From Mobula birostris (lineage: Eukaryota), in the NCBI RefSeq assembly GCF_030028105.1, contig NC_092384.1, forward strand, positions 3,267,665 to 3,331,664: a stretch of 64,000 nucleotides of DNA, in the 5' to 3' direction. Made by a program: the position numbers and the translations under genes. Every line of letters begins with the position of its first letter. Positions within the stretch are counted from its first letter, which is position 1. The notes beneath the pieces were generated by a model. That model was given only the letters and a program-made list of their open reading frames with translations, made no database searches and was not told the DNA's origin. This document shows, piece after piece, positions 18,038 through 56,770 of this stretch.

Positions 18038-18340
18038 CATTGTCGATGTTGATGACAGTGTAAGTGGCTAGAGCAGAAACCTGGAGAGTGAGGTGAGATA
18101 CCAGACAGGTGTAGACTGTCCCGGTTGGCACAACCTGAGTCGCTGACAATCTGCTGGAAGCTTCATATAGCCCATCCGAAGTGGAGTTGGTAACAGTCGA
18201 ACCGGTTGTAATTTTGGTGCCATCTTTATACCAAGTGAGGCTGATACCCATTGGGTAAAAGGGGAATTTAGTGCACATAAGAGCCAATGATACCAATTTC
18301 TCTGGATCTCCAGAGTAAAATTTCAATGGAGCTGGAGGAA
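18038..18340 (-). CDS. Ig C1-set domain exon (C1b), gene A
   Basis: ttcttag|TT CCT CCA...AAT G|gtaaat; 303 nt, phase 1-1, open; [27 protein letters not shown]...YTCLVSH. Confidence 0.9.
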
Positions 18341-18751
18341 CTAAGAAATGGGGGAATATACGAATGTCTGGTTGTTTACGGTTAGCTACATATTTTAGGC
18401 CATATCAGCGTTCGATTTTATTAACATAAAAGCCAGAAGTTTAAAGATTACAACTGCAGGAATTTAAGTTGGATTGGAGAAATATAGTGCTGGATAACTA
18501 ACGGAGAAAATCGTGATCATATGGGATCCGACGCGGCTGTACTCAAAGGGCTCCAGAATTAAACGTTGAAATGAATAATTATGTACAAATATATTAGCCA
18601 AATTTTAATTAATGTCGTTGAATACTCTTGTTTTATATAGTCAACACGGGCAGCTACAATTAATACTGCTATTCTATTTAAGAAGCATTAAACAAAAGGC
18701 AGTTTCGCAGTCGCAAGTTCGCATCAACTGATTCGTTTTTAAAGCTCCTAC

Positions 18752-18835
18752 CTACACAACAAAAGTCGACCCTGTTCCGTTTCCAGCCAGTGTGCCCTGA
18801 TGGGCGATGGTTCAATAATAGACTCCCGCATCTTG
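18752..18835 (-). pseudogene. 3' remnant of a second VJ-type V exon
   Basis: QDAGVYY*TIAHQGTLAGNGTGSTFVV*; the second Cys codon is TGA (18812-18814); 5' part absent, joined at caag. Confidence 0.9.
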
Positions 18836-19294
18836 GCAATTAAAGACCATCAATTTCCTCCAGACATTAAACACCACCAGATTTTGCTTTCTTTCTCGTC
18901 TTGTGGCGCCTTTAGCATCTGTCTGTTCTCAACCTAACACGGATGGAAAGCACGGGGTTCCGGCTGGATTCCAGCTTGGGATCATCGCCTCGAGGTCCGG
19001 AGCTGATGCCACCATATCACCAGCCGGCAACACCAGTGTGTCTTAGATTTAATATATTATACAAATCGGAGAAATCATGAGAATAATTTTCTTTAGACAC
19101 GAAACGCATTGCATTTCATGCTGGAGAAAACAGCTTCCGTACAAATTGTAAAGAGCTTATTTTGTACGTAGTTAATAAGAACCTATGAGCGGTCACAGGG
19201 AAGTCCAGCGAAAACGATTAAATGCGGAGATCATTTAAATCTGGTTTATAGTTACCCGACTTTTTTTTATGATAGTTGAAATCCATAGTCTCAC

Positions 19295-19597
19295 CTGTGC
19301 TGTAGTTGATGATGATGTAAGTGGCTAGAGCAGGATCCCGGAGGGTGACGTGAGGTACCAGACAAGTGTAGACTGTCCCGGTTGGCACAACCTCTGTCAC
19401 TGACAATCTGCTGGAAGCTTCATATAGCCCATCCGAAGTGGAGTTGGTAACCGTCGAACCGGTTGCAATTTTAGTGTCATCTTTATACCAGGTGAAACTG
19501 ATATTGGTTGGGTAAAAGGGCGATGTAGTGCACAGTAGAGCCAAGGCTTCCGATTTCTCTGGATCTCCGGAGTAAATTTTCAATTGAGCTGGAGGAA
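19295..19597 (-). CDS. Ig C1-set domain exon (C1a), gene A
   Basis: ttcttag|TT CCT CCA GCT CAA...ACA G|gtgaga; 303 nt, phase 1-1, open; [14 protein letters not shown]...YTCLVPH. Confidence 0.92.
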
Positions 19598-20024
19598 CTA
19601 AGAAATATTGGAATAGATGGATGAATGGTTGTTTACGGTTAGCTGTATATTCTCGGCAATATCAGCGTTCGATTCTATTAACATAAAAGCCAAATATTTA
19701 AGATTACAACGGCAGGAATTTAAATTGCAATGGGGGAAAATAGTTCTCGATATCTAACCGAGCAAATCGTCGATCATATGGGATCAGTGGCGCCTGTATT
19801 TTAATTTTCCGCAACTCAAAGAGCTCCAGAATTTAATGTTGAAATGAATATTTATGTACAAATACATTAGCCAGATTTTGATTAGTATCGTTGAATACTC
19901 CTGTTTTATATAGTCAACGCGTGTCGCTACGATTAATACTGTTATTCTATTTAAAAGAAATTGTACAAAAGACAATTTCTCAGTCGCAATTTCGCATCAA
20001 CTGAATCGCTTCTAATGCACCTAC

Positions 20025-20345
20025 CCAACACAACTAAAGTCGACCCGGTTCCGGTGCCAATCAATGTGCCCTGATGGGCGATTGTACAATAATAGACTCC
20101 CGCATCTTGTGGACGCACGTTCACTATCTGCAGAAAGCCGCTGAATTTAGTATTGAAGCCGTTCGATGCTCTGGCGTCTTGTTTTGGGTTGATGTAATTA
20201 TTTTTACCCTTTTTCCACCAATATATTTCAACGCGGGAATCCTCTGGCAAAGAGGAAGGGGAACAATCAAAAGAGACATTTTCACCTTTGCTGATTTTGG
20301 CGATTTTAGGGAGTTGTGTAACTTTGGCAGAAGATTTAACTGACC
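20025..20345 (-). CDS. Germline-joined VJ-type Ig V domain exon, gene A
   Basis: tttaatttag|GG TCA...TTG G|gtaggt; 321 nt, open; SVKSSAKVTQLPKIAKISKGENVSFDC...IYWWKK...LQIVNVRPQDAGVYYC...GTGTGSTLVVL, with canonical Cys-Trp-Cys and a J-like GxG motif. Confidence 0.93.
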
Positions 20346-20481
20346 CTAAATTAAAGGAATATCATTTCCGAATCAGTAAGAATCATTACAAAGAGTGTAT
20401 ACAACTGTAAAGACGAACAAGGGCAAACATAAAGCGATATTCAATAACTGTTCCATTCTGAAGAATGGGAAAGCTATTTAC

Positions 20482-20536
20482 CCGTAAAATATATCATCCA
20501 AAGAAGCAGACAGTAAGGTCCCACGCTGGCCAACAT
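20482..20536 (-). CDS. Signal-peptide (leader) exon, gene A
   Basis: ATG...MLASVGPYCLLLWMIYFT G|gtaaat; 55 nt, phase 1, in frame with the V exon after a 136-nt intron. Confidence 0.85.
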
Positions 20537-20604
20537 TCTGGTACAAGTGATCACAGGGATGGCGCAGTCGCGAACTGTTTCTCTGGGTTGAGCTGCCACA
20601 GGGT

Positions 20605-20675
20605 GTGCTGCGTCAATCTTTCCGCGAAAGTAGTGCGGCTTCTGACCAATATGTGGTGAGATTTACTTTCGTTTG
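20605..20675 (-). promoter_or_regulatory. Putative proximal promoter of gene A (IRF-E-like, RUNX, CCAAT, CRE-like motifs)
   Basis: actttcgttt 20665-20674, tgtggt 20652-20657, ccaat 20646-20650, tgcgtca 20609-20615, all within ~70-140 nt of the ATG; motif match only. Confidence 0.4.
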
Positions 20676-20870
20676 TGCTTATGCGAACCGCAGCGCCATC
20701 GTCTTCGAAACCGATTATGTTTTTAGATTGTATTGTTAATAACCTACGGTGTGCAATTTCATTGGATGAACTAAATCCCTGCGGCCCGAAATCTCACTGC
20801 ACTATCTCCTCACTCATTCCCACGTGTCCACTCTCGTTGTCACACCACTTCCCAGCCCCATCACGAACTC

Positions 20871-23669
20871 CATAGAAACCATAGAAACCATAGAAACTGC
20901 AGCACAGAAACAGGCCTTTTGGCCCTTCTTGTCTGTGCCGAACCATTTTCTGCCTAGTCCCACTGACCTGCACATGGACCATATCCCTCCACACACGTCC
21001 TATCCATGTATCTGTCCAATTTATTCTTAAATGTTAAAAAAGAACCCGCATTTATCACCTCGTCTGGCAGCTCATTCCATACTCTCACCACTCTCTGTGT
21101 GAAGAAGCCCCCTCTAATGTTCCTTTTAAACTTCTCCCCCCCCCACCCTTAACCCATGTCTGCTGCTTTATTTTCTCCCCTTGCCTCAGTGGAAAAAGCC
21201 TGCTTGCATTCACTCTACCTATACCCATCATAATTTTATATACCTCTATCAAATCTCCCCTCATTCTTCTACGCTCCAGGGAATAAAGTCCTAACCTATT
21301 CAACCTTTCTCTGTAACTGAGTTCCTCAAATCACGGCAACATCCTTGTAAACCTACTCTGCACTCTTTCAACCTTATTTATGTCCTTCCTGTAAATTGGT
21401 GACCAAAACTGAACACGATACTCCAGATTCGGCCTCACCAATGCCTTAAACAACATCATCGTAACATTCCAGCTCTTATATTCAATACTTTGATTAATAA
21501 AGGCCAATGTACCAAAAGCTCTCTTTACGACCCTATCTGACTGTGACGCCACTTTTACGGAATTTTGTATCTGTATTCCCAGATCCCTCTGTTGTACTGC
21601 TCTCCTCAGTGCCTTATCATTAACCCTGTATGTTCTACGTTGGTTTGTCCTTCCAACATGCAATACCTCACACTTGTCAGTATTAAACTAATCTGCCATT
21701 TTTTAGCCCATTTTTCCAGCTGGTCGAAGTCCTTCTGTAGGCTCTGAAAACCTTCCTCACTGTCTACTACACCTCCAATCTTTGTATCATCAGCAAACTT
21801 GCTGATCCAATTTACCACATTATCATCCAGATCATTGATATAGATGACAAATAACACTGGACCAAGCACTGATCCCTGTGGCACACCACTAGTCACAGGC
21901 CTCCACTCAGAGAAGCAATTCTCCACCACCACTCTCTGGTTTCTTCCATCAAGCCAATGTCTAATCCAATTTACCACCTCTCCATGTATACCTAGCGACT
22001 GACCGCCTATGCGGGACTTTGTCAAAGGCCTTACTGAAGTCCATGTAGACAATATCCACTGCCTTCCCTTCATCCACTTTTCTGGTAACCTCCTCGAAAA
22101 ACTCCAATAGATTGGTCAAACATGACATACTACGCACAAGGCCATGTTGACTCTCCCTAATAAGTCCCAGTCTATCCAAATGATTGTAGTTTCTGTCTCT
22201 CAGTACTCCCTCCAATAACTTACCTACTACCGACGTTAAAGTTCCTGGCCTATAATTTCTCGGATTACTTTTCGATCCTTGTTTAAACAACGGAACAACA
22301 TGAGCCACTCTCCAATCTTTCGGCACCTCACCTGCAGACAGCGACATTTTAAATATATCAGCCAGGGCCCCTGCAATTTCAGCACTAGTCTCCTTCAAGG
22401 TCCGAGGGAACAACCTGTCAGGTCCCGGGGATTTATCCACTTTAATTTTCCTCAAGACAGCAAGGACCTCCTCATTTTCGATCTGTACAGTTTCCATGAT
22501 CTCACTGCTTGTTTCCCTTAATTCCATGGACTTCATGACTGCTTCCTTAGTAAACACAGACGTAAAAAAAACTATTTAAGATCTCCCCCATTTCCTTTGT
22601 TTCTGCACATAGCCGACCACTCTGATCTTCAAGAGGACCAATTTTATCCCTTACAATCCTTTTGCTCTTAATATACCTGTAAAAGCTCTTTGGATTATCC
22701 TTCACTTTGACTGCCAAGGCAACCTCATGTCTTCTTTTAGCCCTCCTGATTTCTTTCTTAAGTATTTTCTTGCACTTCTTATACTCCTCAAGCACCTTAT
22801 TTACTCCCTGCTTCCTATACACGTCATACAACTCCCTCTTCTTCTTTATCAGAGTTGCAATATCCTTTGAGAACCAAGGTTCCTTATTCCTATTCACCTT
22901 GCCTTTAATCCTGACAGGAACATACAAACTCTGCACTCTCAAAATTTCTGCTTTGAAGCTTCCCACCTACCGATAACATCCATGCCAGAGAACAACCTGT
23001 CCCAATCCACGCTTTTTAGATCCTTTCTCATTTCTTCAAATTTGACCTTCTTCCAGTTAAGAACCTCAACCCTAGGACCAGATCCATCCTTGTCCATGAT
23101 CAAGTTGAAACTACTGGTGTTATGATCACTGGAACCAAAGTGCTCCCCTACACAGACTTCTGTCACTTGTCCAAACTCGTTTCCTAACAGGAGATCCAAT
23201 ATTGCATCCCCTCTAGTTGGTTCCTCTATATATTGATTTAGAAAACTTTCCTGAACACATTTTACAAACTCTAAACCATGTAGACCCCTAACAGTATGGG
23301 AGACCAAATCAATATATGGAAAATTAAAATCCCCTACCACCACAACTTTATGTTTCCTGCAGTTGCCTGCTATCTCTCTGAAAATTTGCACTTTCAATTC
23401 TCTTTGACTATTGAGTGGTCTGTAATACAATCCCACTAATGTGGCCATACCGTTCCTCAGCTCCACCCACAAGGACTCAGTAGACAAGCCTTCTAATTTG
23501 TTCTGCCTGAGCACTACTGTAATATTTTCCCTAACAAGCAATGCCACTCCCCCACCTTTCATTCCTCTGCCTCCAACACATCTGAAACATCGGAACCCTG
23601 GAATATTAAGCTACCAGTCCTGCCCCTCCTGTAGCCAAGTTTCACTAATTGCTACAACGTCGTAATTCT
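20871..23669 (-). mobile_element. 5'-truncated CR1 LINE (endonuclease + RT, frameshifted)
   Basis: (catagaaac)3 tail at 20871-20897; overlapping ORFs 22939..23562 (EN: GDFNFP) to 21085..21303 (RT: KSPGPD, YMDFSKAFD, FADDTK); absent from the paralogous site ~57025. Confidence 0.95.
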
Positions 23670-25516
23670 TTTAACATCTACTAAACCTACCCTTCTCCAC
23701 TCACTATTTCCTCGCGAACCTTCCACCCTTGCCACCCTTGCATCCAACAACAAAACAAACTATGGCGAAGGCACCAAAACTCTAATAGCTTTTGACAACT
23801 TCTATGCGCTTTGTACATAATCCTCCTGATTTTTCCGATAAAATGGCAAAATTTCTCGGAGGTAAAATAAGTTGTTGATTTCACAGTGTCCTCGGTTTGT
23901 GCTAAGCCTCTTTGTCGGAGGATTGCGTTATTTCATGTGAAAATTCTGCCAATGATGCGAAACCATTTTAGATGTTACTGTTGAGAGACATTAAGCTAGA
24001 GTACGGCAGAGAAACAGCAGAATCATCACCATCTTCCTTAAATGAGTGAGTTACGCGCAATTCACCAAGAGTTTGTCTGGAAACTGATTTGAGTTTAACA
24101 GGGAACAGGTAGAAATCATTTTACGACCAGTGTTATGTTTATTTTGTGTAATTTCTCCTAAACCACTAACCTTTTAATGATAATCAGAGACTATGATTAA
24201 TTATTCCTCCTTTTTTTCTGCTTTTCTGCTTTCCTCAACGCTGAAAATCTTCCCGCATTCCGCACACCTTATCAAATTACTTGGTAATATTCAGTGATAC
24301 AAACCGATCGGCTTTGATGAGGCAGGGTGGAACAGAGAACTTGATTTGTTGTCTGGATGGTTGTACTTTCGCATGCTTTGGGGTGATTTAATAATAATTT
24401 GGAACACACATATTGCAGGTTTTGTTTTAAACGGAGGCAGTGTTCAATTTAAGAGAGAAACACACACACACATACACACACACACACAAACACGTTTGCT
24501 AAATTCCGCAAATGGAGGATGTCAGATGCTCAGTCAGAGGTTAATGTAGTAAAGGGTCGAGGACGTAAGTGGAAGGAAATTCCATCCTGTACCGATTGAA
24601 GAACTTAAACGTCAGAGTAAGTCTCACCGAATCCTATTCCATGGCGTTCTGTCTCCTGAGTCTGTTGGTCTCGGCATGTTGGTGAAGTGGGACACAACTT
24701 TCAGTGCTTGAACGGTTGATCAATTTCTTCTGCAGAAATAATATTTGTTTCAGTTCGCATGGAATACTGGGAAACATCTATCGCATGGAAACATAGCTAA
24801 TTATATTGGTGATTGGCTCAATGGTTGAACGCAGAGCGTGACGGTTGAAGGTGGTCTCGGACCGGTGGCTTATGACTAGAGGCGTTACCAGAAGGGTCGG
24901 TGCAGCATCTTTTGCTGTTCATTGTTTATATAAACTATTTGCATGTGAACGCATGAGGAGTGGCGATAAGGTTTCAAATCATATTAAAATAGCTGGTATC
25001 GTAAAGTACGAAGAAGGTAATGGACAACTGTAGGAAAATTTCAGTCAGTTAGGTCAGTGGGCCCAATATTAGCAAATGCTTTTAGTTTCCGTATGGTTAA
25101 TCTGCATGTTGCTTGCATGAACTGCGATTTCGTCAACATCCAGGACTTTTTCTCTTTGCACTTTCTCTTCTTCATTTCCCGATCTTGGGGTGGGGGAATT
25201 TTGAACAAAAAATAAATATTAACATTTCAATTCCACGCCTATGTGTTGTTTTCTAACTGACTGCTTCTGAGTGCTTCGGTAAAAATAAACACAATTCATT
25301 ACCAGAAGTTGAAATTTAGTGTCCTCGTCTGAGTCAAAACGGGTTTTTATCTGGCTATGGCGAAAATCTGAATTTCATTCATTCTGCAATAAACTACATT
25401 AAACTGAATGCAATAGTCTGGAATTATTTCGGACTTATATTAAGGCATCAGAAAACACACGGGTCAATAACTTTTGTTTGATTGGCTTTGAATGAAGCAG
25501 TAAGAAACCATAATTT

Positions 25517-26480
25517 TAGAAACATAGAAACATAGAAAACAGGTGCAGGAGTAGGCCATTCGGCCCCTCGAGTCTGCATCTCCATTCAGTATTATCTTGG
25601 CTGATCATCCAACTCAGAACCCTGTACCAGCATTCTCTCGATACCTCCTGACCCATTTAGCCACAAGGGCCATATCTAACTCCTTCTTAAATATAGCCAA
25701 CAAACTGGTCTCAACTGTTTCCTGTGGCAGAGAATTCCACAGATTCACCACTCTCTGTGTGAAGAAGTTTTTCCTCATCTCGGTGCTAAAAGGGTTCCCC
25801 CTTATCCTTAATCTGTGACCGTTCGTTCTGGACTTCCCCATCATCGGGAACAATCTACCTGCATCTAGCCTGTCCAATAACTTTCGAATTTTATACGTTT
25901 CAAACAGATCCCGCCCCCCAATCTTCTAAATTCCAGCGAGAATAAGCCTAGTCGATCCAGTCTTTCCTCATATGAAAGTCCTGCTATCCCAGGAATCAAT
26001 CTGGTGAACCTCCTTTGTACTCCCTGTATGGCAAGACTGTCTTTCCTCAGATTAGGGGACCAAAACTGCACACAATACTCCACGTGTGGTCTCACCAAGG
26101 CCTTGTACAACTGTAGTAGTATCTCCCTGCTCCTGTACTCGAATCCTCTTGCTGTGAATGACAGTATAACATTCGCCTTTTACACTGCCTGCTGTACCTG
26201 CATATCCACTTTCAATGACTGGTGTATAATGACAGCCAAGGTTTCGTTGCACCTCCTCTTTTCCTAATCGGCCACCATTCAGATAATAATTTGTTTTCCT
26301 GTTTTTTGCCACCAAAGTGGATAACCTCACATTTATCCACATTAAATTACATCTGCCATGAAATTGCCCACTCACATAACCTATCCAAGTCACCCTGCAT
26401 CCTCTAAGCATCCTCCTCACAGCTAACACTGCTGCCCAGCTTCGTGTCATCCGCAAACTTGGAGATGCTGCATTTAATTC
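25517..26480 (-). mobile_element. CR1 3' fragment (shared with 58706-59610)
   Basis: tagaaacatagaaacatagaaaa tail; ORFs 25614..26507 are RT C-terminal; same insertion point in the paralogue. Confidence 0.9.
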
Positions 26481-27795
26481 CCTGCCTGTAAGTATGATTG
26501 GGAACATCCAGCCTTAACTTCACAATGTTTGCTGAAGGGCAGTTTCCTACAGCTCAGTTGCTGGAGAGCTCACAGTCAAAAACGGTTTTACAACCATCAG
26601 TTCCAAACCTGGCTCAATTAACTTATGTGTTTATCACTTATTATGTTTATCTCATAACCGATGCTCGACTGCGGCAGGATTCAACATTGAGTATACAGCA
26701 TGCGTCAGAGAAAAAATGATACTTCTCAGACAGTTAATTGCCATATCACAATGCTCAATCACGATATATTCCTATGATTGAGCATTTAATAGAAGAAAAG
26801 ACATTCGCAAGTGTACCACAACTGAGTGGTTACCAGAACATTCGCCAAAATCCTAGGTAATTCATCTAGTTCCGTGATCATGGTATAGCGATTTCTCCGT
26901 CGATTTTAATAACTTTACATATATCCACTGTAAATTTCTTTGTGAAAGTAATCGAGCTGACTCATGCAGGGAGGTATCTATCTCCTGTAGGTTTCACGTT
27001 CTTAGATATATCGGAATTTGCCATTGTGAATCAGAAGAGAGAGGGTATATCTAAAATCAGTGCCCAGTACGCTCCCCAGCTGTTGCCAGAAATCCAGATT
27101 GATGTTCAAGGGATACCAGTGAAGCAATGTTAGTGTTAGGTGTACCTCTGACCGAAAGAAAGAGTTGAGGTGGATTATTGAAACATGCCAGCTGTGAGGC
27201 CAGCGTAACCTTGCACGATATTTATCAAGCTTGAGCGCGTGTATTCACAAAACGTATAAGCAGTTTTTCGTTCGAACCTACGTTGGAGACCCGTAGTCCA
27301 AAAATAAAGCGTCGAATGAATTGTTGTTCCCAAGGACTTCATACGGCTGCATCCACTGACATACGTAGGCCTGATCTGGAATAAATTTGTGGAGTACTCG
27401 ATCTGTGTGTGTAAGAGCGGGAGAGAGAGGGAGAAGTGGCGGTGGGGTTTGGCAGAGAGATAGCGAGAGAAGGTATTAACGTTTCAAATGTGCAGGAAGT
27501 ATGCTGACGCTGAAACGTTAATAATAAAATGAAAAAAAAACTTAGCATGCAAACGCATTCAAGAGCCATGGTAATTTCTGTTAACATCCATCATTCTCGT
27601 TTAGAGGGCATTCTACCACATCGCATATGTGTCTGTGAGTGTGAGAGAGAAACTGAATTAAATATATCGTGCAGACAGAACAAAATATACTGCCTGAGAA
27701 GTCTATTCTTGAGGTTACTGTTCTTATTCCCCACAAATTAAGAACAATGTTAAATGCTTGGCCAAATGTAAACCAGGGAAAATTACTCAATTCTA

Positions 27796-27797
<2 letters not shown>

Positions 27798-27826
<29 letters not shown>

Positions 27827-27840
27827 GTGGGGGGGGGGGG
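27798..27840. repeat. (GT)n microsatellite followed by a G-run
   Basis: Direct reading. Confidence 0.95.
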
Positions 27841-28149
27841 TTGTCGGTGGTGGGTGTAGGGATGAGGATCCAGGGGTTTTGCTACATCTTGCACTAGGAA
27901 TTGAGGTATGAAAAGGGAGGAAGTCTTGAAGAGAGAATTTTGGGAGTTCGGTAGAGCGCTGAAAAGGAGTACCTCCAGGGTAGTAATCTCTGGATTGCTG
28001 CCTGTACCACGCTCCAGTAAGTGTAAGAAATGGCAGATTAATTCGTGGCTGGGGAGCTGGTGCCAAGGGCAGGATTAAAGATTATTGGATGCTCGGGATG
28101 TCTTTTGGGGTAGGTTTGACCTGTATATACCTCGCGGGCAGGTTTGTAA

Positions 28150-39760: not shown

Positions 39761-40647
39761 TCTAACCAGGTTCTAAATATCCTCAGTATGAGTAACCTCC
39801 GTTTCCGATCCATCCAAACGTCTCACATTTCACCTGTGCTCATGCGTTTGCGATCCGATGACGAATTAACTGTTTGCAGTTCCAGAACATAGTATATGCA
39901 TATTGGAAGACCATAAGCTATCAACCGGATGGATACCGGACTCTACTGGAGGATCGTAACTTTGGCAAAGTACTGCAACCGATTTCATCCGCTAGATATA
40001 AGGCCACGAACGGGTTCAGTACTTTGGGAACTTCGACCTGAAATAAGGGCTTCAATTTGGTAAATTGATACATATCCCTGTACCGCTTAGGTGTACTGCT
40101 TGTTTCTTCTTGTCAAGCAACGGACATTGCAGTTAAAATTCAATCAGGTAAAACAAATTCCAGGTTTGGCACGTTTAGTACTTGGGATTCCGTTACGAAT
40201 AAATAACGTCGACACTTTCCATTTTTCTCGGCGGTGAATCGACTGCGTCGTCCCTATGATAAACCATTTCTGATTTCTTGGTCTCTGCCACGGCGATAGC
40301 GGCATAGCTCCAGTTCCTATGAGGCGGCCTCTGCTTGGTCTGAAAAATCCACATTAGCCGGCATATATCATTGCTTTCATTTTTTAGTCACATTGAGTTT
40401 CATGTTAAATATAGTCCCGAGAACTGCGCAAAATCACCACTGTCTCAAAAGACTACCAACTTACAGTGCTTGTTTCATTACCTGCAAGTATAAATAGTTG
40501 AACTTTTGTGGCGGCTTATCTCTATTTTATCTCTACCTATTCTGCCACATAGATGAATTATACTGTATCCTGTACTAAAAAGATCAACGGTTTGCACAGC
40601 GGACGAAATGCAGAATTAGGGTCATAGTCAACTCATCCACCACCTTA

Positions 40648-40815
40648 CTAAATAGCAGAGCAGTTGGATAGAACGAAATGCTTATACTTGCTCCAAATTC
40701 CCACGTTAATACGTACCTGCGCGTAGACAGTCCTCTCTTGATTCAAGGACCCTGGAACTTTCCGGGATTTGGTAAGATCTAGTGCAGCGTACGGCATCAT
40801 CGCCTCGCTTGTAGA
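40648..40815 (-). CDS. Cytoplasmic terminal exon, distal copy (ITIM-like MPYAAL + ITSM TVYAQV), gene B
   Basis: tttcaatctatgcag|TCT ACA AGC...ATT TAG; open; STSEAMMPYAALDLTKSRKVPGSLNQERTVYAQVRINVGIWSKYKHFVLSNCSAI*. Confidence 0.75.
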   Translation of the reverse strand, partial: STSEAMMPYAALDLTKSRKVPGSLNQERTVYAQVRINVGIWSKYKHFVLSNCSAI

Positions 40816-41687
40816 CTGCATAGATTGAAACACATTTTAAAAGTGCATGAGCCAGAAACGATCAATACACACAAACATACAATGCCGATTATGAATCTCT
40901 ACAGCCTTCATCAACGCACCTGCACGGACAGTAAAAAAGAAAATAACATACATCGCGTCGACAAAGCTCCTCAGTATGATCTTTGATATCCGGTAAATTA
41001 CCTTAATTTCAATACTTGCTTGATGTTCGACTTTACATTCACAAAACGACAACTTCTCGCCAAGAATTAAAAGTAAGTAATAAGTAAGTTCAGCTACAGA
41101 CCATGTTAGTGCTTGCAACGACATACGGTAATTTCAGTTTTTGATTACTAGCTTCACTTAGTCATAAATGAAAAGCCTATTTCCGGCTACATTTTGTAGT
41201 TAAGTCCGTGCCACAAACAGAACTAGCCTGTCACTTTCTTTTGAGGATACAGTACAGAATAGGGAACTGCTATTCCAGCAGTAGTCTGAAGGTACGACCA
41301 GACCGCCCCAGGCAAGGACGGCAGGTATGATCAATATTCATGTCATTGCTCTGGAGTTAAAAGCATCCAATAATAAATCATCTGTTTTGTTGTTAGCAAG
41401 CAAGGTTGTTAGAAAGTGAGTTAAAAATATCAGCCTAGCAAAGTAGGATATAATCTGTTATCAATGTTAACAGACAAAATATATTAGAAACATGAAACAT
41501 TAAAGAAAAAACCTGCAGTGCAATACAGGCCTTTCGGCCCACAAAGCTGTGCCGATCATGTCCCTACCTTAGAACTACCTAGGCTTTACCCACAACCCTC
41601 TATTTTTCTAAGCTGCATGTAGCCATCTAGTAGTCTCTTAAAAGACCCTATCGTTTCCGCCTCCTCCACCGCCACCGGCTGCCCATG

Positions 41688-46000: not shown

Positions 46001-46447
46001 GCTAACATATGAGGAGCGTTTGTCGCTTTGGATTGTATTCATTAGAGTATAGAAGAATGAGAGGGGATCTCATAGAAACATTTCGAATGTTGAAAGGGTT
46101 TGACAGAATCGATGTGGAAAGGTTGTTTCCCTTGGTGGGTGTGTCCAGGACAAGAGGCCATAGTCGTAGAATTAAAGGGTACCCAGTGAAAACAGAGATG
46201 AGGAGATTTTTTTTTTAACCAGAGGGTTGTTGATTTGTGGAATTCGTTTCCACATACAGCTGTGTGGCCCGATCATTGAGGGTGTTTAAGGAGGAGGTTG
46301 ACAGGTATCTAATTAGTCAGGGTATCAAAGGATATGGGGAAAAAGCCGGAAATTGGAACTAGATGGGTGAATAATTTAGCTCATGGGGGAGCTGCGGAGC
46401 AGACTCGATGGGCCGAATGGCTAAATTCTGCTCCTTTGTCTTGTCTT
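43057..46447 (+). mobile_element. Long CR1 LINE (ORF1 SGNH-esterase end, EN, RT, tail) nested in an older CR1
   Basis: ORFs 43193..43381 (SGLLP...NVWL..WC...FLNHWDLFWGR), 44031..44705, 44818..45426, 45534..45908; ttgtcttgtcttg tail; the host CR1 is uninterrupted at ~39490. Confidence 0.93.
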
Positions 46448-47598
46448 GTGATTGTATTTGCCTCCTCAACACCGACTGAACATGCAAGTTAATATTTAGG
46501 GTGTTCTGCACAAGGACTCCCAAGTCCCTTCACATCTCAGATTTGTGGTTTTGCTCCCCGATTATAATATAGTCTGTACATTTATTTCTTCTGCCAAAGT
46601 TCATGACAATACAATTTCCAACACTGAATTTCATTTGCCACTTTCGTGCCCATTCTCCTAATCTGTCTGTCCTTCTGCAGCCTAACTGTTTCCTCAACAC
46701 TACCTGCCCCTTTTAGTTTCTAACCTGTTTCTAAATATACTCAGTATGAATAACCTCCGTTTCCGATACATCCAAACGTCTCACATTTCACTTGTGCTCA
46801 CGAATTGTGATCCGATGACGAATTAACTGTTTACAGATACAAAACATCGTATATGCATATTGAAAGACCATAAGCTATCAACCTGATGGATAGCGGAATC
46901 TACTGGAGGATCGTAACTTTGGCAAAGTACTGCAACCGATTTCATCCACTGGATATAAGGCCACGGACAGGGTCAGCCGTTTGGGAACGTCGGCTTGAAA
47001 TAAGGGCTTCAGTTTGGTAAATTGACACATATCACGGTACCACTTAGGTGTACTTCTTGTTTCTTGTTGTCAAACAAGCGACATTGCAGTTAAAATTCAA
47101 TCAGGTAAAACAAATTCCAGGTTTCGCACGTTTAGTATTTGCGATTCCGTTCCGAATAAATAACGTCGACACTTTGCATATTTCTGGGCTGTGAATTGAC
47201 AGTGTCGTTCTCCCTATGATAAACTATTTCTGATTTCTTGGTCTCTGCCACGGCGATAGGGGCGTAGGTCAAGTTCCTATCAGGCGGCCTCTGCGTGGTC
47301 TGAAAAATCCACATTAGTTGGGAAAAATCATTACTTTCATTTTTTAGTCATACTGAGTTTCATATTAAATATAGTCCCGAGAACTTCCCAAAATCACCAC
47401 TATCTCAAAAGACTACCAACTAACAGTGCTTGTTTCATTACCTGCAAGTATAAATAGTTGAACTTTTCTGGCCGCTTATCTCTATTTTCGCTCTACCTTA
47501 TCTGTCACGAAAATGAAATATACTGTATACTTTAAGAAAAAAAATTCAACGGTTTGCACAGCAGAGGAAAAGCAGAATTAGGGTGAACCATCACTTTA

Positions 47599-47766
47599 CT
47601 AAATAGCAGAGCAGCTGGATGGACGGAAATGCTTATACTTGCTCCAAATTCCCACGTTAATACATACCTGCGCGTAGACCGTCCTCTCTTGATTCACTGA
47701 CAATGGAACTTCCCGGGGTTTGGTAAGATCTAGTGCAGCGTAAGGCACTATCACCTCGCTTGTAGA
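47599..47766 (-). CDS. Cytoplasmic terminal exon, proximal copy (ITIM VPYAAL + ITSM TVYAQV), gene B
   Basis: tttcaatctatgcag|TCT...TAG; phase 0 matches the upstream 38-nt exon; STSEVIVPYAALDLTKPREVPLSVNQERTVYAQVCINVGIWSKYKHFRPSSCSAI*. Confidence 0.85.
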   Translation of the reverse strand, partial: STSEVIVPYAALDLTKPREVPLSVNQERTVYAQVCINVGIWSKYKHFRPSSCSAI

Positions 47767-48973
47767 CTGCATAGATTGAAACAGAGAAATATACACATTT
47801 TAAAAGTGCAGGTGCTAGAAACGATCAGTAAGCACAAACATACAATGCCAATTATGAATCTGTACGGCATTCATCAACGCATCTGCACGGTCTGTACATC
47901 GCGTCGACAAAGCCCCTCAGTATGACATTTGATATGCCGTACATTACCTTAATTTCCATACGTCTTGGTATTGGACTTTACAGTCGCAAAATGACAACTT
48001 CTCGCAAAGAATTAAATGTAAGTAATAAGTAAATTCAGCTACAGACCATGTTAGTGCTTGCAACCACATACGGTAATTTCAGTTTCCGATTACTAGCTTC
48101 ACTTAGTCATAAATGAAAAGCCGGTTTCGGCTACATGCTGTAGTTAAGTCCGTGCAACAAACAGAACTAGCCTGCCACTTTCTTTTGAGGATACAGTACA
48201 GAATAGGGAACTGCTATTCCAGCAGTAGTCTGAAGGTACGACCAGTCCGCCCAGGCAAGGACGGCAAGTATGATCGATATTCATGACATTGCTCTGGAGT
48301 TAAAAGCATCTAATAAAGATCATCTATTTTGTTGTTAACAAACAAGGTTGTTAAAAAGTGAGTTTAAAATATCATCCTAACAAAGTAGGATGTAGTCTCC
48401 TATTAAAGTTAACAGACAGATTATATTAGAAACATCAAACATAAAAAAAAAACTACAGTACAATGCAGACCCTTCGGCCCACGACGCTGTGCCGATCATG
48501 TCCCTACCTTAGAACTACCTAGGCTTTACCCATGGCCTTCTATTTTTCTAAGCTGCATGTAGCCATCTAGAAGTCTGTCAAAAGACCCTATTGTTTCCGC
48601 CTCCACCACCGCCACCGGCAGCCCATTCCACGCACTCTCACTCTCTGCGTAAAAAACTTACCCCTGACATCTCCTCATATTGGATGCTAAATACTTTTTT
48701 TGCTGTCTAGAAGACAAACGCAGAGATTTCTAGTTTCATTGTTACGCGGTTGATAATGCTAAAATTGTCTACAAATTAAGCTGATGGTAATTAGAGGAAG
48801 AAGCGAGTGTCAACTGTCCTGCGGGCGTGGATATCCAATCCGCATCTTGATGATAATATTGTAAACTAATAACAAAATACCCACGACAAAGAACCTGTAG
48901 GTACACATATATATATATATAGTGTATTAGTTATTATGTTTTACATACAATTCAATCGGGTTTGGATACATAC

Positions 48974-49011
48974 CAGGCATTGATCGGATCTGTCTTCCTC
49001 CTTTTCCGTGC
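48974..49011 (-). CDS. Short cytoplasmic exon, gene B
   Basis: ttatttaatttccag|GC ACG GAA...TGC CTG|gtatgt; 38 nt, phase 1-0, bridging the TM and ITIM exons in frame (GTEKEEDRSDQCL). Confidence 0.75.
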
Positions 49012-49687
49012 CTGGAAATTAAATAAGTTAAGAATTAGCATATTGTCATCAAAGACAGAGGCTTCTTCTCGAGTTACTGGACATTACTAAACATTGCAAA
49101 GGAATTACCTCTTTTCCAGTGTTTTTTTTTAATATTAGAATGACTGTTCTGATGTCGACGAATCTTAATGTTGGTTTTTGCCTTTGGGGCTTACAATGCC
49201 GGCATGGAAAGAGAATTCGTCTGCAAAGTTTCTGCGAGCGCCAGTGTCTCCCCGAATGCCGGAGTTCAGCATTAATGAATTCTCAGTCACCAAAAATGCG
49301 CTGTGCATACTAAGTAAATGAGAGAATTCCTTATATATTAAATTGGAGGATAATTTCTTACGTTGAGTTACAACTTCCAGTTCTTTTAGACGATCATTTG
49401 TTTTTGACCAATTCAAGCTAAATTCATCAGGACTTAGTGATCATTAACGCAAAACCTTAGTTAATGATAGAAGGTGAACATGCTGAGGTCTCAAAGCCAA
49501 TTATCTCTTAGGTAATGACGGAAAGAGTGAAATACGCTTACGAAGAAAGTATCTTTCTGGATTTTCAAAAAAGGTGAAACGCTACCTAAAGAGTAAATCA
49601 GTTGGTGACAGTTTGGAGTCTTTAGCAGAATGATCATCAGAACTTGGGAAAGAATGCCGAAGGAAACGTAACTGCACAAAGTGAGCA

Positions 49688-49853
49688 GTGACGGTCAGTA
49701 CAACTGGGACCAACATAACTACTCATAGTGCCAAGTGATGGTCAGTACAACTGGGACCAACATAACTACTCACAGTGCCAAGTGACGGTCAGTAGAATTG
49801 GGACCAAATAATTACTCATAGTGCCGAGTGAGGGTCAGTACAACTGGGACCAA
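49688..49853. repeat. ~47-bp minisatellite, ~3.5 copies
   Basis: Unit gtgacggtcagtacaactgggaccaacataactactcatagtgccaa. Confidence 0.9.
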
Positions 49854-50424
49854 TGATGTTAGTAGTTAGACTCGGAAGCAAACAGAGAGCTCTAAATTTG
49901 TATGTGACACAAATTTGAGAGAGATCCTCAGTACTGAGAACATTACAGCGGGTTATCAGAATCTTGATAAACTGATTAAACATGCGCGATGGTGGATTTC
50001 AACCGAAGGGACCAGAAGATCGTTCATTACTTGGAACGTGCGAATCCTATGGTCGAAGAGTGTAGGGGTCTCGGTGCATAAACGCACGACAATTTTACAC
50101 TACGTCTCTGGTGGGCAAGACCGTAAAACTCAGGTTTAGAGAGCCAAGGCTGAAAAGAGGGACATTATGCGAAACATGACTGCATCTCACTCAGAGTGAC
50201 CAGTATAACGGCCTGTGTAGAAAAATAGGGCTCAAACACGTTTTTTTTTTGTTTTTGTTTTTGTTTTTGAAACTATTTGCAGTAATCGTAAAAGAAATGT
50301 AAGGACATCCATTACAGATTGAGTCTCCTTTCTCATAACAAGGACGAGGGATGGCATAATAAGTGTCTTAAAATTTTACGAAATTATTAGGGAATTCGAT
50401 ATAGGAAGATTAAACATAACACCA

Positions 50425-53400
50425 TAGGGCCAGAAGATAAAGCAGCAGAAATAGCCTATTCAGCCCATCGAGTCTGCTCTGCCATTCAATTTTGGGCTGC
50501 TCCAGTTCTTTCAGTCATCCCCATTTCCCTCCCTACTCCCCATACCCTTTGATGCCTAGCTAATCAAGAACATATCTATCTCTGCATAAATGCACCCAAA
50601 GTATTGGCCTCCACAGCCGCTCGTGGCATCAAATTCCACAGATTTTTCATCCTCTGACTGAAGTAATTTCTCCGCATCCCTGTTGTTAGTGGACGTCCTT
50701 CAATCCTGAAGTCGCACCCTCTTGTACTGGGCTCCGCTACCATGGGAAATAACTTCGTCATATCTAAGCTGTTTAGGACTTTTAACATTCGGAATGTTCT
50801 AAGAGGTCCCCGCACCCCACCCCCCCCGCACTCAACCTATCTCCTGAACGCCAGGAAATACAGCCTAAAATGCGATGCATTCCTCATACTGTAAACCTTT
50901 CATCCTGGAATCATTCTCGTAAATCTTCTCTGAACCCTCTACAATGTCTGTGTATAATATCTAAAATAAGGAGCCTAAAACTGCACACAATACTCTAAGT
51001 GTGGTTTCACGAACGCCTTAGAGCCTCAACATCTGATCCCTACTCTAATGTTCTATGCCTCCAGAAATGAATGCCAACATTGCATTTGCCTTCCTACCAC
51101 CGACTCAACCTGGAGGTTAAACATTAGGGTATCCTGCACATGGACTCCCAAGTCCCTTTGCATCCCTGCATTTTGAATTCTCTCTCCATCTAAATAGTAG
51201 TCTGGCCGTTTGTTTATTACAACAAAAAGCATGACCATACACTTTCCAACTAGTATTTCATTTGCCACTTCTTTGCTATTCCCCTAAGCAATCTAACACT
51301 CTCTGCACGCTCTCTGTTTCCTCAACACTACCCGTTCCTCCACCTATCTTTGTATCGTCGGCAAAATTAGCTACAAAGCCATTAATCACCCAGTCCAAGT
51401 CATTGGCATGCATCATTAAAAGCAACCGTCCCAACACGGACCTCTGTGGAACTTCACAGGTAACCGGCAGCCAGCCAGAATAGAATTCGTTTATTCCCAC
51501 TCTGTTTTCTTCCGCCAGCCAGTTCTCTACACATGGGATCTTATCCTGCTAAGCAGCCTCATGTGCGGCACCTTCTCAAAGGCCTACTGAAAATCCAAGT
51601 AGCCCACATCTATTTCATCTCATTTGTCTACTCGGTTTGTAATTTACTCAAAATTTGCAGTAGGTTAGTCAGTCAGAATTTTCCTTTAAAAACCCATGCT
51701 CCCTTTGGCCTATCTTGTCATGTGCCTCCAGGTACTCCGTAATATCATCCCTAACTATCGATTCCCAACAACTTCCCAACCACTAATGCCAGGCTAACCG
51801 CTCTATAGTTTCCTTTCTGCTGCTTCCCACCCGTCTCAAATAGCGGATTAACATTTGCAATTTTCCAGTCATCCGGTACAATGTCAGAACATATTGATTC
51901 TTGAAAGATCATTGTTAATGCCTCCACAATCTCTGCAACTACTTACTTCAGAACCAGAGGGTGCATTCCATCAGGTTCGGGAAATTTATCCACCCTCAGA
52001 CCATTAAGCCTCCTGAGCACCTTCTCAGTCGTAATTTTCACTGCACAAGCTTCACTATCCTGACACTCTTGAATGTCCGATATACTGCAGATGTCTTCCA
52101 CTCTGAAGACTGAAGCAAAATACGCATTCAATTCCTCTGCTATCTCTATGTCTCTCATTACAATATCTCCAGCGATATTTTCTATTGGTCCTATATCTAA
52201 ACTCAACACTCCTTTACCCTTTATATACATAAAGAAAGCTTTTAGTATCTTCTTTGATATTAGTCGCCAGGTTTGTTTCATAATCCATCTTTTCCTTCCT
52301 GATGACCTTCTTAGTTTCCTTCAGCAAGATTTTAAAAGCTTCCCAATCCTCTGTTTTGCCGTTAGCTTTGGTTTCCTTGTACGCTCTCTCTTTTGCTTTT
52401 ACTTTGGCTCTGACTTCATTTGTCAGCCACGGTAGTTTATTTCTTGCATTCCAAAATTTCTTTTTATTTGGAATATATCTGCTTCGCATTTCCCACATTT
52501 TTTTTTCGCAGGAACTCCAGCCATTGCTGCTCTGCGATCCTTCCTGCTAGTCTCCCTTTCCAGTCAACTTCGGCCAGTTCCCCTCTCTTGCCATTGTAAC
52601 TTCCTTTAATCCGCTGAAATACCGACACATTGGAATTTAGTTTCTCCTTCTCAAATTTCAAAGTGAACTCTATCATATTGTGATCACTGTTCCCTGAGGG
52701 TTCCTTAACATTGAGCTCCCTTATCACCTCCAGATCAATGCACAACACCCAATCCAGAACAGCCAATCCCCTAGTGGGCTCAACAACAAGCTGTTCTAAA
52801 AAGCTATTCCTTAGAAATTCTGCGAATTCTGTCTCTTCAGGTCCAGTCCTGGCCTAGTTTTCCCAACCCACTTTCATCTGAAAATCCCTAACGATTATCA
52901 TGACTTTGCCTTTCCGTCACGCCTTTTCCATCTCCTGTCGTAATTTGTAATCCACATCTCGGCTTCCGCTTGGAGACCTGCATACAACTGTCATTAGGGT
53001 CCTTTTACCCTGGTCTTTTATTAACTCAAGACAGAGTCTCTACACCTTCTGACCCAATGTCATCCTTTTATAATATTATTATTTCTTAATCACAGCACAC
53101 CCTCTGCATACTAACCTATCTTTCCCATACACCAAATATCCTTGGACGTACAGCTCCCAATGGCAGCCATCCTTTAGCCAAGTTTCAGAGATGGCCACAA
53201 CGTCATACTTGCCAATCTGTATCTGAATTTTAAGATCGTCCACTTTATTCCTTATGCTGCGTGCATACAAACAGAACATTTTCAGCCTGGTATTTGTTGC
53301 TTTCTGTTTTAACTGCACTGTGCCTCTACTATCCTGTAACTCATCCCACTGGCTGTGATTATGCCTCATCTCCTGCCTGTCCTTTGTCTCTTCTCTGTTG

Positions 53401-54010
53401 CACGCTATCATTGCTTTACTTATGTTTTCCCCTTCCTCAGCCCCATCACTCTAGTTCTCATCCCCCTGCCAAATTCGTGTAAATTCTCACGAACACCTCT
53501 ATTAAATCTGCCTGCAAGGATAATGGACCCCTTTGGGTTTAGGTGTAACCCGTTCCTTTTTATATAGTTCGAACCTCCCCCAGAAGAGATCCCAATGATT
53601 CAGAGTTCCGATGCCCTGCTCCATACACCAGTCTCTCAGCCTCGCATTAATGTGCCTGAAAATGCTATTCTTGCGCTGGTTAGCACCTGGCACAGACAGC
53701 AATCCTGAGAATACTACCCTGGGGGTCCTGCTTTTCAGCTTCCGGCAAAACTCCCTATAATCTGTCTTCAGGACCTCCACGCTTTTTCTACCTATGTCAT
53801 TGGTACCAATGTGTAACAAGACCTCTGACTGTTCACCTTTTCCCTTCAGAATACTCGACACCCGATCCGAGACATCTCGTACCCTGTGACCTGGGACGCA
53901 ACACACCATGCAGGTATCTTTATCAGGCTGACTTAACAACCTGTCTGTCCCCTTACTATGGAATCCTCTATGACTACCCGATTCCTCATCCTCTTCTCTC
54001 CTGGGCAGAA
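50425..54010 (-). mobile_element. Near-full-length degenerate CR1 LINE (ORF1 esterase, EN, RT)
   Basis: ORFs 53502..53939 (VLLHIGTNDIG...), 53079..53411 (YDVVAISETWL), 51943..52766, 51053..51500, 50576..50815. Confidence 0.92.
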
Positions 54011-54012
54011 GG

Positions 54013-54290
54013 AGAAGATGGCGGCGCGACGCAGCTCGCAGCGGCCACTCCGGTGGTGATATTTGTTATCTGTCAAGTAGGGTGCCGTTCACAAGCCTGA
54101 TTTGATGGAGACAGACGTGAGAGCACGGAGGAACATCTGGTGAAACATCTGAAATGTCTGCTTCGCTGCCGCTGCTTCAGAGCCCAGCTCTGCATCCTAT
54201 CCATGTCAGTTTGAAACATCCGGCAAACTTCAACAGAAGCTCCGAAGACCTTACCCCTGCGGGAGGAATGATCTTCGCCCAGAAGTCGTA
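54013..54290 (+). mobile_element. GC-rich interspersed repeat / LINE 5' fragment
   Basis: aagatggcggcgcgacgcagctcgcagcggccactccgg... is recognised from memory as a common ray repeat start. Confidence 0.4.
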
Positions 54291-54846
54291 TGAAGTCGTG
54301 TGGTGAAAACAAAAGCACAAGGGCGACCAACCTTCTATCAGCCCAGGATAGAGAGAGTGGGTACAAACAGAAGGATAACGTACGAGTATTTCAAAATCCC
54401 TGGTCCCCATTAAGCTTTGTGCACACAAGTTAGCTGGGATATCAGTGCTTCCCAAAAAATGCAGAGAGAGTCTGTGGGCCGGATGAATGGGATAAGTTTT
54501 GTTGGATGAGAGTGGCATTGCGAGAAGCCGAACATGAACGGATTAATGGACATGGTCGAGCTGCTGTCGACAGTCAATGCCACGGTAGGTGTGGAGGGAT
54601 TAAGAAGACAGAGAAGAAGAAAACCCAAAAGAAATTTGAAAAAGAACTGTGCCAACATCGTATTGAGATTATGGAGTCACGGTGATTTACGTTAGAGGAG
54701 CATAAATCATGGCCCGCGCTGGCGTGCCGATATGTACGATGTAATCAGTTGTAACCTACTGGAATGATGAAGGAATAGATAAAACTTCCCTCTCACTCTT
54801 TCTTTACCCACCTTCCCCTGCACGTTCAGCTAATTCAGATTCTTAC

Positions 54847-54957
54847 CTTTATTTTTCCTTGCTATACATCGCTTCGCAATGAGAAGAACCAGCAATATAG
54901 ACACCAAACCGCTCAATGCACATACGAAGGTCATGACGTTATTGATAGTCCTAGCTC
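54847..54957 (-). CDS. Transmembrane exon, gene B
   Basis: tttcaattttccag|GA GCT AGG...AAT AAA G|gtaaga; 111 nt, phase 1-1; ARTINNVMTFVCALSGLVSILLVLLIAKRCIARKNK (uncharged TM, basic stop-transfer). Confidence 0.9.
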
Positions 54958-56467
54958 CTGGAAAATTGAAATATATTAGATACAAATGAAAACTCTTGGC
55001 CGTTCAGACTAATAAATCCCCTTGTCTTTGAAACTGATAAAACATCTGAAATTCAGCCACTGTTTTAATTTCCTGTAAAGTAAAAACGTAGTAGACAGAT
55101 AGACATTGGATTTCGTAAATTCAATCCGGAAACAAAAAAAAAATGCATATATATATATATAAATCGGTATTTCTAATTGATTAATGATGTTTAAAAAACG
55201 TTTGTCAAAACATACATTGCTTTCAGGTGTCACTTTATGAAACTGCTGCTTTCAGCGAGCTATAAGGCTTTTCATCCTCTGGGGAAGTTTGTATTTAAAT
55301 TCGCATAGTTTTGTGCCTTGTTGAATGGAACTTTCAATATCTTTGCACTCTTCCGGTATGCACAATGCCATACCAGATACAGGGAATGAAGAGTTGTGTT
55401 TCGGCTTGGGATGGACACTGCCCTGTGTATACTTTCAATACCCCGCTCTGATTCACTTGACAATCAAAGCGAACGGTAAAGCGACACTTGTTAGCAGACT
55501 ACTGGGAACAACATTTCACTGGAAATGAGCTACTCTTCGCCATTGTGACGGGGAAGCGGAAACAATGGTGGCATTGTTGCAGCGAAGTTCATTTAATTAA
55601 AAGCAGAACAGGAGGAAAGGAGACTGGAGGTAAACTGGACAAATGAATTGAGTCACGGGAATTGCAATTTGATCCACACAATTTATCAGATGAAAACGTA
55701 TAAAGAAGTACATATAACGTACATATAAAGTATCTGGAGAACATCCTTTCATGATAATCAGAAACATGTTGGATATTTTGGCTTCATAGAGGGAGAGGAT
55801 ACAAATAGAAAGATAACGTATCCAGTATTTCAAAATCACTGGCTGCCATTAAGCTCTGTGCACGCAAATTAGTCGGGTTATCAGTACTTTGAACCCCACA
55901 CCCCCACAAAAAAAAATGCAGAGAAAGAGTTTGGGAGCGGATAGATGGGATGTTTTGCCTGAATACGACAAGGTTAAACCTGATAGATTATTGGAGGAAA
56001 TTTACTTGGCAATTAAAGGCGATTTGTTTTCTGTGGACAATAAACAGCACCAGATTTGCTCCTTTTCGCGTCTTGTGGCGCCTTTAGCATCTGTCTGTTG
56101 TCAACCTAACACGGATGGAAAGCACGGGGTTCAGGCTGGATTCCAGCCTGGGATCATCGCCTCGAGGTTCGAAGCTGATGGCACCACATCACCGGCCGGC
56201 AACACCAGTTTGTTATAGATTTAATAAATTATACAAATCGGAGAAATCATGAGAATAATTTTCTCAGGACACGACACTCATTGCATTTCATGCCAGAGAA
56301 GGCAAATTCCATGCAAATTATAAAAAAAAAACTTATTTTGTATGCATTTAATAAGAACCTATTAGCGGTCACATGGAAATCTAGTGAAAACGATACGATG
56401 CGGACATCGTTTAAAACTGGTTTATAGTTACCCGACTTTTTATGATAGTTGAGATCCATAGTCTCAC

Positions 56468-56770
56468 CTGTGCTGTAGTTGATGACGATGTAAGTGGCTA
56501 GAGCAGAAACCCGGAGGCTGACGTGAGATACCAGACAAGTGTAGACTGTCCCGGTTGGCACAACCTGTGTCACTGACAATCTGCTGGAAGCTTCATATAG
56601 CCCATCCGAAGTGGAGGTGATAACAGTCGAACTGGTTGTAATGTTGGTGCCATCTTTATACCAGGTGAAACTGAAATCCATTGGGTAATAGGGAGATGTA
56701 GTGCACAGAACAGCCAAGGCTTCCGATTTCTCTGGATCTCCGGAGTAAATTTTCAATGGAGCTGGAGGAA
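56468..56770 (-). CDS. Ig C1-set domain exon (C1c), gene B
   Basis: ttcttag|TT CCT...ACA G|gtgaga; 303 nt, open; 23 nt differences from C1a; flanks paralogous to C1a. Confidence 0.9.

Follow-up and report, generated by a model that had tools for sequence, protein, structure and literature searches.

The 64,000-nucleotide stretch of the Mobula birostris genome analysed here (hereafter the window; NCBI RefSeq assembly GCF_030028105.1, contig NC_092384.1, positions 3,267,665 to 3,331,664; no N runs) contains exons of two immunoglobulin (Ig)-type receptor genes, denoted gene A and gene B, and most probably (we put the probability at about 0.8) represents part of a batoid tandem cluster of SIRP-like, non-rearranging VJ-C1 paired receptors, that is, receptors in which a V domain with a J-like G strand is followed by a C1-set domain. 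Gene A is a fused member of this cluster and gene B a headless one. The exons are real, yet the two genes are damaged or remodelled copies, neither of which is an intact inhibitory gene. The initial annotation of the locus had joined a leader-V-C1 exon set and a C1-transmembrane (TM)-tail exon set into the image of such a gene; the window holds none, and the two sets belong to two separately rearranged genes. The window contributes rearranged family members only and no new kind of molecule.

All gene features described here lie on the minus strand. The leader, V, three C1 and gene B TM exons are bounded by canonical AG/GT splice sites, and the V, C1 and TM exons are all of phase 1-1; altogether, in spite of 8-14% divergence at the nucleotide level, none of the eleven coding exons of genes A and B has lost its open frame or its canonical splice sites, and tblastn searches with related Hemitrygon and Mobula proteins place every one of them. 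The leader-V-C1 series previously proposed to start at 20536 is well founded, with an ATG, canonical splice sites and Pfam matches. The coding part of the leader exon (20482..20536) consists of the ATG at 20536, 18 codons plus one base and a phase-1 donor (gtaaat), and 17 of its 19 residues match the leader of the Mobula hypostoma protein P0011. The V exon (20025..20345, phase 1-1) runs from the YYC motif to the J-like G strand GTGSTLVVL without interruption, is recognised as ig/V-set by Pfam (E 1e-10 to 9e-9) and encodes a domain 77% identical to the V domain of Hemitrygon P0001. Neither the V exon nor the intron after it contains a CACAGTG-type heptamer of a recombination signal sequence (RSS), and the entire 64-kb window lacks a heptamer-spacer-nonamer arrangement. 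The V domain is of the non-rearranging VJ type: V and a J-like GxG(T/S)xLxV reside in one exon that lacks an RSS.

The three C1 exons, C1a (19295..19597) and C1b (18038..18340) of gene A and C1c (56468..56770) of gene B, are each 303 nt long, of phase 1-1 and flanked by canonical AG/GT. All three match the Pfam C1-set profile (PF07654; gathering cut-off, 21 bits), with E-values of 3.8e-12 (46.8 bits), 1.2e-10 (42.0 bits) and 3.4e-12 (47.0 bits), respectively. C1-set domains are recognised by three hallmarks: the BC loop opens with (F/Y)(F/Y/H)P, exactly 13 residues separate the B-strand Cys from the C-strand Trp, and the F-strand Cys is followed by xVxH (PMC2785349, Hatherley et al.). All of these are present in each exon: FYP in C1a and C1b and YYP in C1c, the 13-residue Cys-Trp spacing, and CLVPH (in C1a) or CLVSH. 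NCR3 (NKp30), a single VJ domain without a C domain, was considered as a model and rejected, given that C1-set exons follow the V exon here. The ectodomain part of the earlier observation is confirmed far beyond chance, and the evidence also supports the attribution of the exons to a non-rearranging VJ plus C1-set receptor family of cartilaginous fish, with a single-exon VJ without RSS and chondrichthyan relatives.

C1a and C1c were correctly taken to be direct paralogues with shared flanking introns: by self-BLAST, 18832-19684 and 56005-56857, which contain the two exons and their flanking introns, are 89.4% identical over 857 bp. Beyond this duplication, however, each gene carries a rearrangement of its own that is demonstrated by the alignments. 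Gene A is a fusion, in which a deletion with CAAG microhomology joined the intron following C1a to a point midway through the next gene's V exon. That intron tracks its gene B counterpart up to ...TTGCCAAG and then switches to mid-V exon sequence at the 18832/18831 junction, after which come the V remnant, the intron and the C1b exon of the downstream fusion partner. The remnant (18752..18831; three-way alignment and self-BLAST), ~80 nt long and derived from the end of a second V exon, contains a TGT>TGA change at the YYC cysteine and a 1-nt deletion, and has no acceptor. Because of this fusion, gene A has two C1 exons, of which C1b is 75% identical to C1a at the amino-acid level.

The gene A TM exon (15929..16009, phase 1-1), located by tblastn with Hemitrygon P0001 (73% over 26 aa), splice sites and hydropathy, encodes a segment with two arginines (LLFSRCVWFRFVFLIF...; DRTLLFSRCVWFRFVFLIFGILLFLNK). 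The terminal coding region (about 14860..14958) was likewise placed by tblastn with P0001. A canonical cag acceptor (first base 14952) yields the tail K-E-V-P-stop, so that the predicted canonical splice product is L-V-C1a-C1b-TM(Arg)-KEVP, 357 aa in length, the L-V-C1a part of which is 80% identical to P0011. In either version of the tail (KEVP, or ~34 aa after the TM segment), there is no tyrosine motif. Gene A may encode a SIRP-beta/gamma-like three-domain receptor: it resembles SIRP-beta in its basic TM residue (Arg, found twice) and in a short tail devoid of signalling motifs, adaptor pairing being putative, and SIRP-gamma in the predicted tail of 4 residues.

Gene B has lost its front end. 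The 5' flanks of the two genes match (20702-20871 with 56857-57026, and 23667-28387 with 57024-62149; self-BLAST), but the flank of gene B (56857..57026; self-BLAST and junction alignment) directly adjoins, at about 56857, the intron upstream of C1c. Nothing remains of the stretch equivalent to 19685-20701 of gene A, which comprises the leader and 166 bp upstream of its ATG, intron 1 and the V exon, as well as a part of intron 2, and no leader or V exon occurs in the 57-64 kb part of the window. Gene B is headless: a ~1-kb deletion took the proximal promoter, the leader and the V exon. What is left is in good order, with the frames of C1c, the TM exon and the three tail exons open and their splice sites kept; the region from C1 to the stop is 83% identical to Mobula birostris P0002, and C1c alone is 85% identical to the C1 domain of P0011. 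The uncharged TM exon (54847..54957, phase 1-1; hydropathy and tblastn) encodes VMTFVCALSGLVSILLVLLIA, then KRCIARKNK. On its own, gene B cannot give rise to a receptor that is secreted or inserted into the membrane, and it most likely is a pseudogene of recent origin, in which the exons have yet to decay.

The tail of gene B is encoded in three exons: a 38-nt cytoplasmic mini-exon (TEKEEDRSDQCL; 48974..49011, phase 1 to 0), placed by tblastn with Mobula P0002; a 99-nt cassette exon (47668..47766, phase 0-0) with the first immunoreceptor tyrosine-based inhibitory motif (ITIM), VPYAAL, which ends in ...TVYAQ; and the last coding exon (47132..47299), with the second ITIM, LTYAPI, followed by IVYHRE and VIYSER and a TAA stop at 47134-47132. 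The spliced tail, then, has two ITIMs (VPYAAL and LTYAPI), TVYAQT at the second position and no fourth motif. The immunoreceptor tyrosine-based switch motif (ITSM) TVYAQV read in this tail earlier is a read-through artefact: its V comes from the intronic GTA, and across the splice junction TVYAQ is followed by T, such that the mature predicted tail of gene B contains no TxYxx(V/I) ITSM. The ITIM+ITSM tail is accordingly absent from the window, gene B having two ITIMs plus TVYAQT, and gene A an Arg-containing TM segment and a short tail. Nor does the full C1-TM-cyt1-cyt2 series drawn from 56770 survive. Its C1c and uncharged TM exons do, but the 'cyt1' segment with VPYSVL (about 48179..48229) would be a phase 0-0 exon after a phase-1 TM donor, was found in none of the 190-odd fetched family and related proteins, and is no better conserved between the two copies of the tail region than some intron stretches.

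This tail region is itself duplicated in tandem (39493-41686 and 46451-48626, 87.7% identical by self-BLAST), with a long interspersed nuclear element (LINE) between the copies. In the downstream duplicate of the cassette and last tail exons (Y1, 40178..40815; self-BLAST and tblastn), the cassette exon (40815-40717) is intact, and the last exon (about 40339-40178) has LTY changed to WSY and a stop six codons early. The annotated model of P0011 (397 aa) carries two 33-residue ITIM cassettes in tandem, matching the duplicated 99-nt phase 0-0 exon. Because P0011 holds two cassettes in tandem, the use of both gene B cassettes is, by analogy, plausible.

The closest proteins to the window genes come from Mobula and Hemitrygon, and the exons belong to a large chondrichthyan multigene family. 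Searches started from the C1c open reading frame (ORF) and then from P0001 found members with 82-89% identity in Hemitrygon akajei and Mobula birostris, 72% in M. hypostoma, 53-65% in Heterodontus, Heptranchias, Chiloscyllium and Scyliorhinus, 59% in Leucoraja and 44% in Callorhinchus. Among these, P0011 ('tapasin-related protein-like'), P0001 (Hemitrygon akajei, 'Ig lambda-1 light chain-like') and P0002 (Mobula birostris, 'uncharacterized') are 77-83% identical to the window genes, which are their paralogues or orthologues and not identical to them. P0011 is an intact L-V-C1-TM-tail gene, P0001 an Arg-TM short-tail form, and P0002, like gene B, begins inside the C1 exon; unlike these three, gene A has two C1 exons by fusion, and in gene B the loss of the leader and V exon by deletion can be demonstrated.

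Most of the family members have a V-C1 ectodomain, and the fetched proteins fall into a long-tailed type, with ITIM and ITSM motifs, and a short-tailed type with an Arg in the TM segment. The short-tailed type recurs in seven further elasmobranch species (of Hemitrygon, Hypanus, Scyliorhinus, Heterodontus, Heptranchias, Carcharodon and Chiloscyllium); P0001, P0016, P0051, P0058, P0086, P0070, P0088 and P0094 are examples from these genera other than Carcharodon. Intact relatives with the L-V(J)-C1-TM-inhibitory tail organization, namely, P0011 and Heterodontus P0006, bear out this part of the ancestral L-V(J)-C1-TM-ITIM-ITSM gene postulated initially, in contrast to the ITIM-ITSM tail that had been ascribed to gene B. 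Canonical ITSMs (TEYAQI, TEYAAI, TEYAEI) are present at the fourth tyrosine position in the shark and other cartilaginous fish paralogues P0009, P0015, P0029, P0030 and P0061. The fourth tyrosine motif has disappeared from the ray lineage; the corresponding sequence in gene B is DTVNSQPR. The skate protein P0024 (Amblyraja radiata, 493 aa) has a V-C1-C1 arrangement, with two nearly identical C1 domains before the ITIM tail; duplication of the C1 exon recurs in the family, independently of the gene A fusion.

The automatic NCBI names of these proteins vary widely, from 'tyrosine-protein phosphatase non-receptor type substrate 1-like' (PTPNS1-like, equivalent to SIRP-alpha-like) to 'immunoglobulin lambda-1 light chain-like' and 'tapasin-related protein-like', and some members are named MHC class II or FcRn. 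The family is already predicted in public annotation under SIRP-alpha-like names, just as the initial annotation had cautioned. The suggestion that the family is uncharacterised fares differently in the two kinds of sources: no paper on a chondrichthyan SIRP-like family was found in searches of the available literature, whereas the databases already predict its members.

The connection to SIRP comes from several comparisons. A family profile of nine members, searched against 1.84 billion representatives, yielded 99 clusters at E <= 1e-30 and matched bird (P0130) and bat (P0147) SIRP-alpha at ~1e-27 in a single stretch extending from C1 via TM to near the C terminus; the hhalign probability for the family and SIRP-alpha is 98%. 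In a direct BLASTP comparison, shark P0004 matches bird SIRP-alpha with E 2e-11, and all four tyrosine motifs are aligned in order (APYAAL/LTYADL, TVYAQ/SEYACI, LTYASI/LTYADL and TEYAQL/SEYASV). The identity between the window V domain and the SIRP V domain (d1) is 30-40%, and that between C1c and SIRP d2 and d3 is 27-30%. The tail of gene B itself is too diverged for a significant pairwise match, and the link rests on the shark orthologues and the family profile. Taken together, these matches show homology, as distinct from orthology, between the family and the tetrapod SIRPs across the C1, TM and tail regions, the tail of the inhibitory members being homologous to the four-tyrosine tail of SIRP-alpha. 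An already described family with the same tail had been named at the outset as the finding that would speak against a new kind of receptor; the tail of the shark members does prove collinear with that of SIRP-alpha in its four tyrosine motifs.

Apart from the tail, the likeness to SIRPs includes a V-set domain at the N terminus that has a J-like G strand and precedes one or more C1-set domains. It extends to the make-up of the family as a whole, which is a paired-receptor family with inhibitory L-V(J)-C1-TM-tail members and Arg-TM short-tailed members, akin to the SIRP-alpha/SIRP-beta pattern described for mammals (PMC12975943). The differences are also clear: the per-domain identity is only about 27-40%, the basic TM residue is an Arg near the outer face and not a Lys, and the ray lineage lacks the fourth tyrosine motif and has T at +3 in the second. 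In the C1-domain tree (with d2 representing SIRP; deeper forks unresolved), C1a, C1b and C1c belong to a batoid clade together with P0011 and P0001, which lies within a well-supported set of 19 shark and ray rows, with tetrapod SIRP d2 outside the chondrichthyan radiation. PRARPs are not known to have a C1 domain.

Several observations weigh against the locus being a cluster of SIRP-like receptors as described here. Neither gene corresponds to an annotated protein flagged as the window's own in the database searches with the C1c ORF and then P0001. The splice junctions of both genes are predictions from the genomic sequence. The terminal ORF of gene A that is conserved with Hemitrygon (RFRRNGSAMDG...TIP) can be reached only via a weak alternative donor, not the strong one. 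The ray-type tail of gene B does not match SIRP-alpha significantly in pairwise comparison (E 0.3), and typical family members have one C1 domain, compared to two in SIRPs. Finally, C1a, C1b and C1c, compared with one another, give values of 0.8-1.4 for the ratio of nonsynonymous to synonymous substitution rates (Ka/Ks), and identity is about as high in introns (84-89%) as in exons (86-92%).

Because of these Ka/Ks values and of exons hardly more conserved than introns, genes A and B could both be drifting relics. Taken to its end, this reading makes both genes dead debris of unequal recombination in a fast-evolving cluster that encodes nothing functional. It gains from the lack of a leader, V exon and proximal promoter in gene B, from the missing acceptor for the Hemitrygon-conserved terminal-exon frame in gene A, and from the failure of the database searches to return a protein of the window itself. 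Elevated Ka/Ks, however, is common in live immune receptor families, and the ratio among the C1 exons does not settle the choice between a live gene and a pseudogene. Moreover, the preservation of eleven open, correctly spliced exons at the observed divergence argues against this reading, and the V-C1-C1 form, represented by the skate protein P0024, exists in annotated models. We consider it unlikely, albeit worth serious attention, that both genes are dead.

A B7-type ligand, that is, a V-C protein similar to NCR3LG1 (B7H6) or PD-L1 rather than a SIRP-kind receptor, is a very improbable identity for the family. What brings it to mind is a second VJ-C1-TM family, 33-37% identical (P0017-P0021, from Hemitrygon, Mobula and Hypanus), that is auto-named NCR3LG1-like or PD-L1-like; in Mobula birostris and Hemitrygon, this sister clade shares its chromosome-sized contigs with the SIRP-like genes, and some of its members have a TM Arg. 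In addition, the predicted ectodomain superposes best on PD-L1 (TM-score 0.70), but that score reflects only the extended inter-domain angle of the model. A Foldseek search with the AlphaFold model of the P0011 ectodomain (predicted local distance difference test score, pLDDT, 83) gave equal E-values, all ~1e-14, for Ig light chains and PD-L1 and does not discriminate between them. The J-like GxG(T/S)xLxV, the C1-set hallmarks, the ITIM tails and the Arg-TM paired forms all point to a receptor.

Still less probable is a place for the family in the UrIg/UrIg2 lineage of non-rearranging shark antigen-receptor relics instead of among SIRP relatives. UrIg2 (9dmx_A) is the best sequence match of the C1 exons among solved structures (E 1e-19 to 5e-16), and both UrIg and UrIg2, also from cartilaginous fish, have a single-exon, non-rearranging VJ followed by C1-set domains (PMC12227049), but this score adds up three weak single-domain matches of 18-22 bits apiece and reflects no specific relationship. 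The liver produces UrIg, a secreted dimer with 3 C domains, whereas the number of C domains in UrIg2 is 9-11 (PMC12227049, Flajnik et al.). The window genes, in contrast to these at least three C domains, have one or two C1 exons together with a tail collinear with that of SIRP-alpha; neither UrIg nor UrIg2 has a SIRP-like ITIM tail, and the UrIg2 paper mentions neither an ITIM for UrIg2 nor SIRP (PMC12227049).

The window harbours no genes besides these two, and their surroundings are rich in repeats. Four LINE-type elements with endonuclease and reverse-transcriptase ORFs are present in the window (21085-23562, minus strand; 43057-46442, plus strand; 50434-53875, minus strand; 62235-63873, minus strand). 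One LINE segment (20871-23667) is inserted in the 5' flank of gene A relative to gene B, one element separates the two tail duplicates, and one fills the TM-to-tail intron of gene B, which also contains a 47-bp repeat in 3.6 copies (49687-49853). A segment downstream of gene A (8318-12368) is 88-91% identical to one between the two genes (32076-34514). The presence of this segment at both sites implies that the unit repeated in the cluster exceeds the two genes by themselves in size and complexity. G-rich minisatellites with periods of 33, 59, 67, 92 and 134 bp lie downstream of gene A (6774-7465, 9720-9923).

Assuming that the SIRP-like assignment is correct, we infer that inhibitory members of the family would be engaged via the V domain, with the ensuing tyrosine phosphorylation of VPYAAL and LTYAPI recruiting SHP-1/SHP-2-type phosphatases. 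Arg-TM members, such as gene A, might pair with an Asp-bearing adaptor that carries an immunoreceptor tyrosine-based activation motif (DAP12, FcR-gamma or CD3-zeta class) or else act as decoys.

In evolutionary terms, the family may, quite tentatively, be an undescribed chondrichthyan branch of the SIRPs, that is, a one-C1 VJ-C1 paired system of inhibitory and activating receptors that comes from the base of the jawed vertebrates, in which the microhomology deletion described here independently built a tetrapod-like V-C1-C1 ectodomain on an activating-type TM segment. C1-set domains are rare outside Ig, T cell receptors and MHC, and kinship between SIRP and the antigen-receptor precursor has been proposed (PMC2785349). 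If the tentative scenario is true, the family would be a living model of the V-C1 myeloid receptor type proposed as that precursor. A large and so far unpublished family of SIRP-like VJ-C1 genes that is present in sharks, rays and chimaeras and comprises both ITIM-tailed and Arg-TM forms would trace the SIRP-type paired receptor back to the origin of jawed vertebrates and would be useful to researchers of UrIg-type relics; the analysis also corrects misleading database names. The value of the window itself lies in providing a clear example of cluster evolution by microhomology deletion, exon-cassette duplication and LINE insertion.

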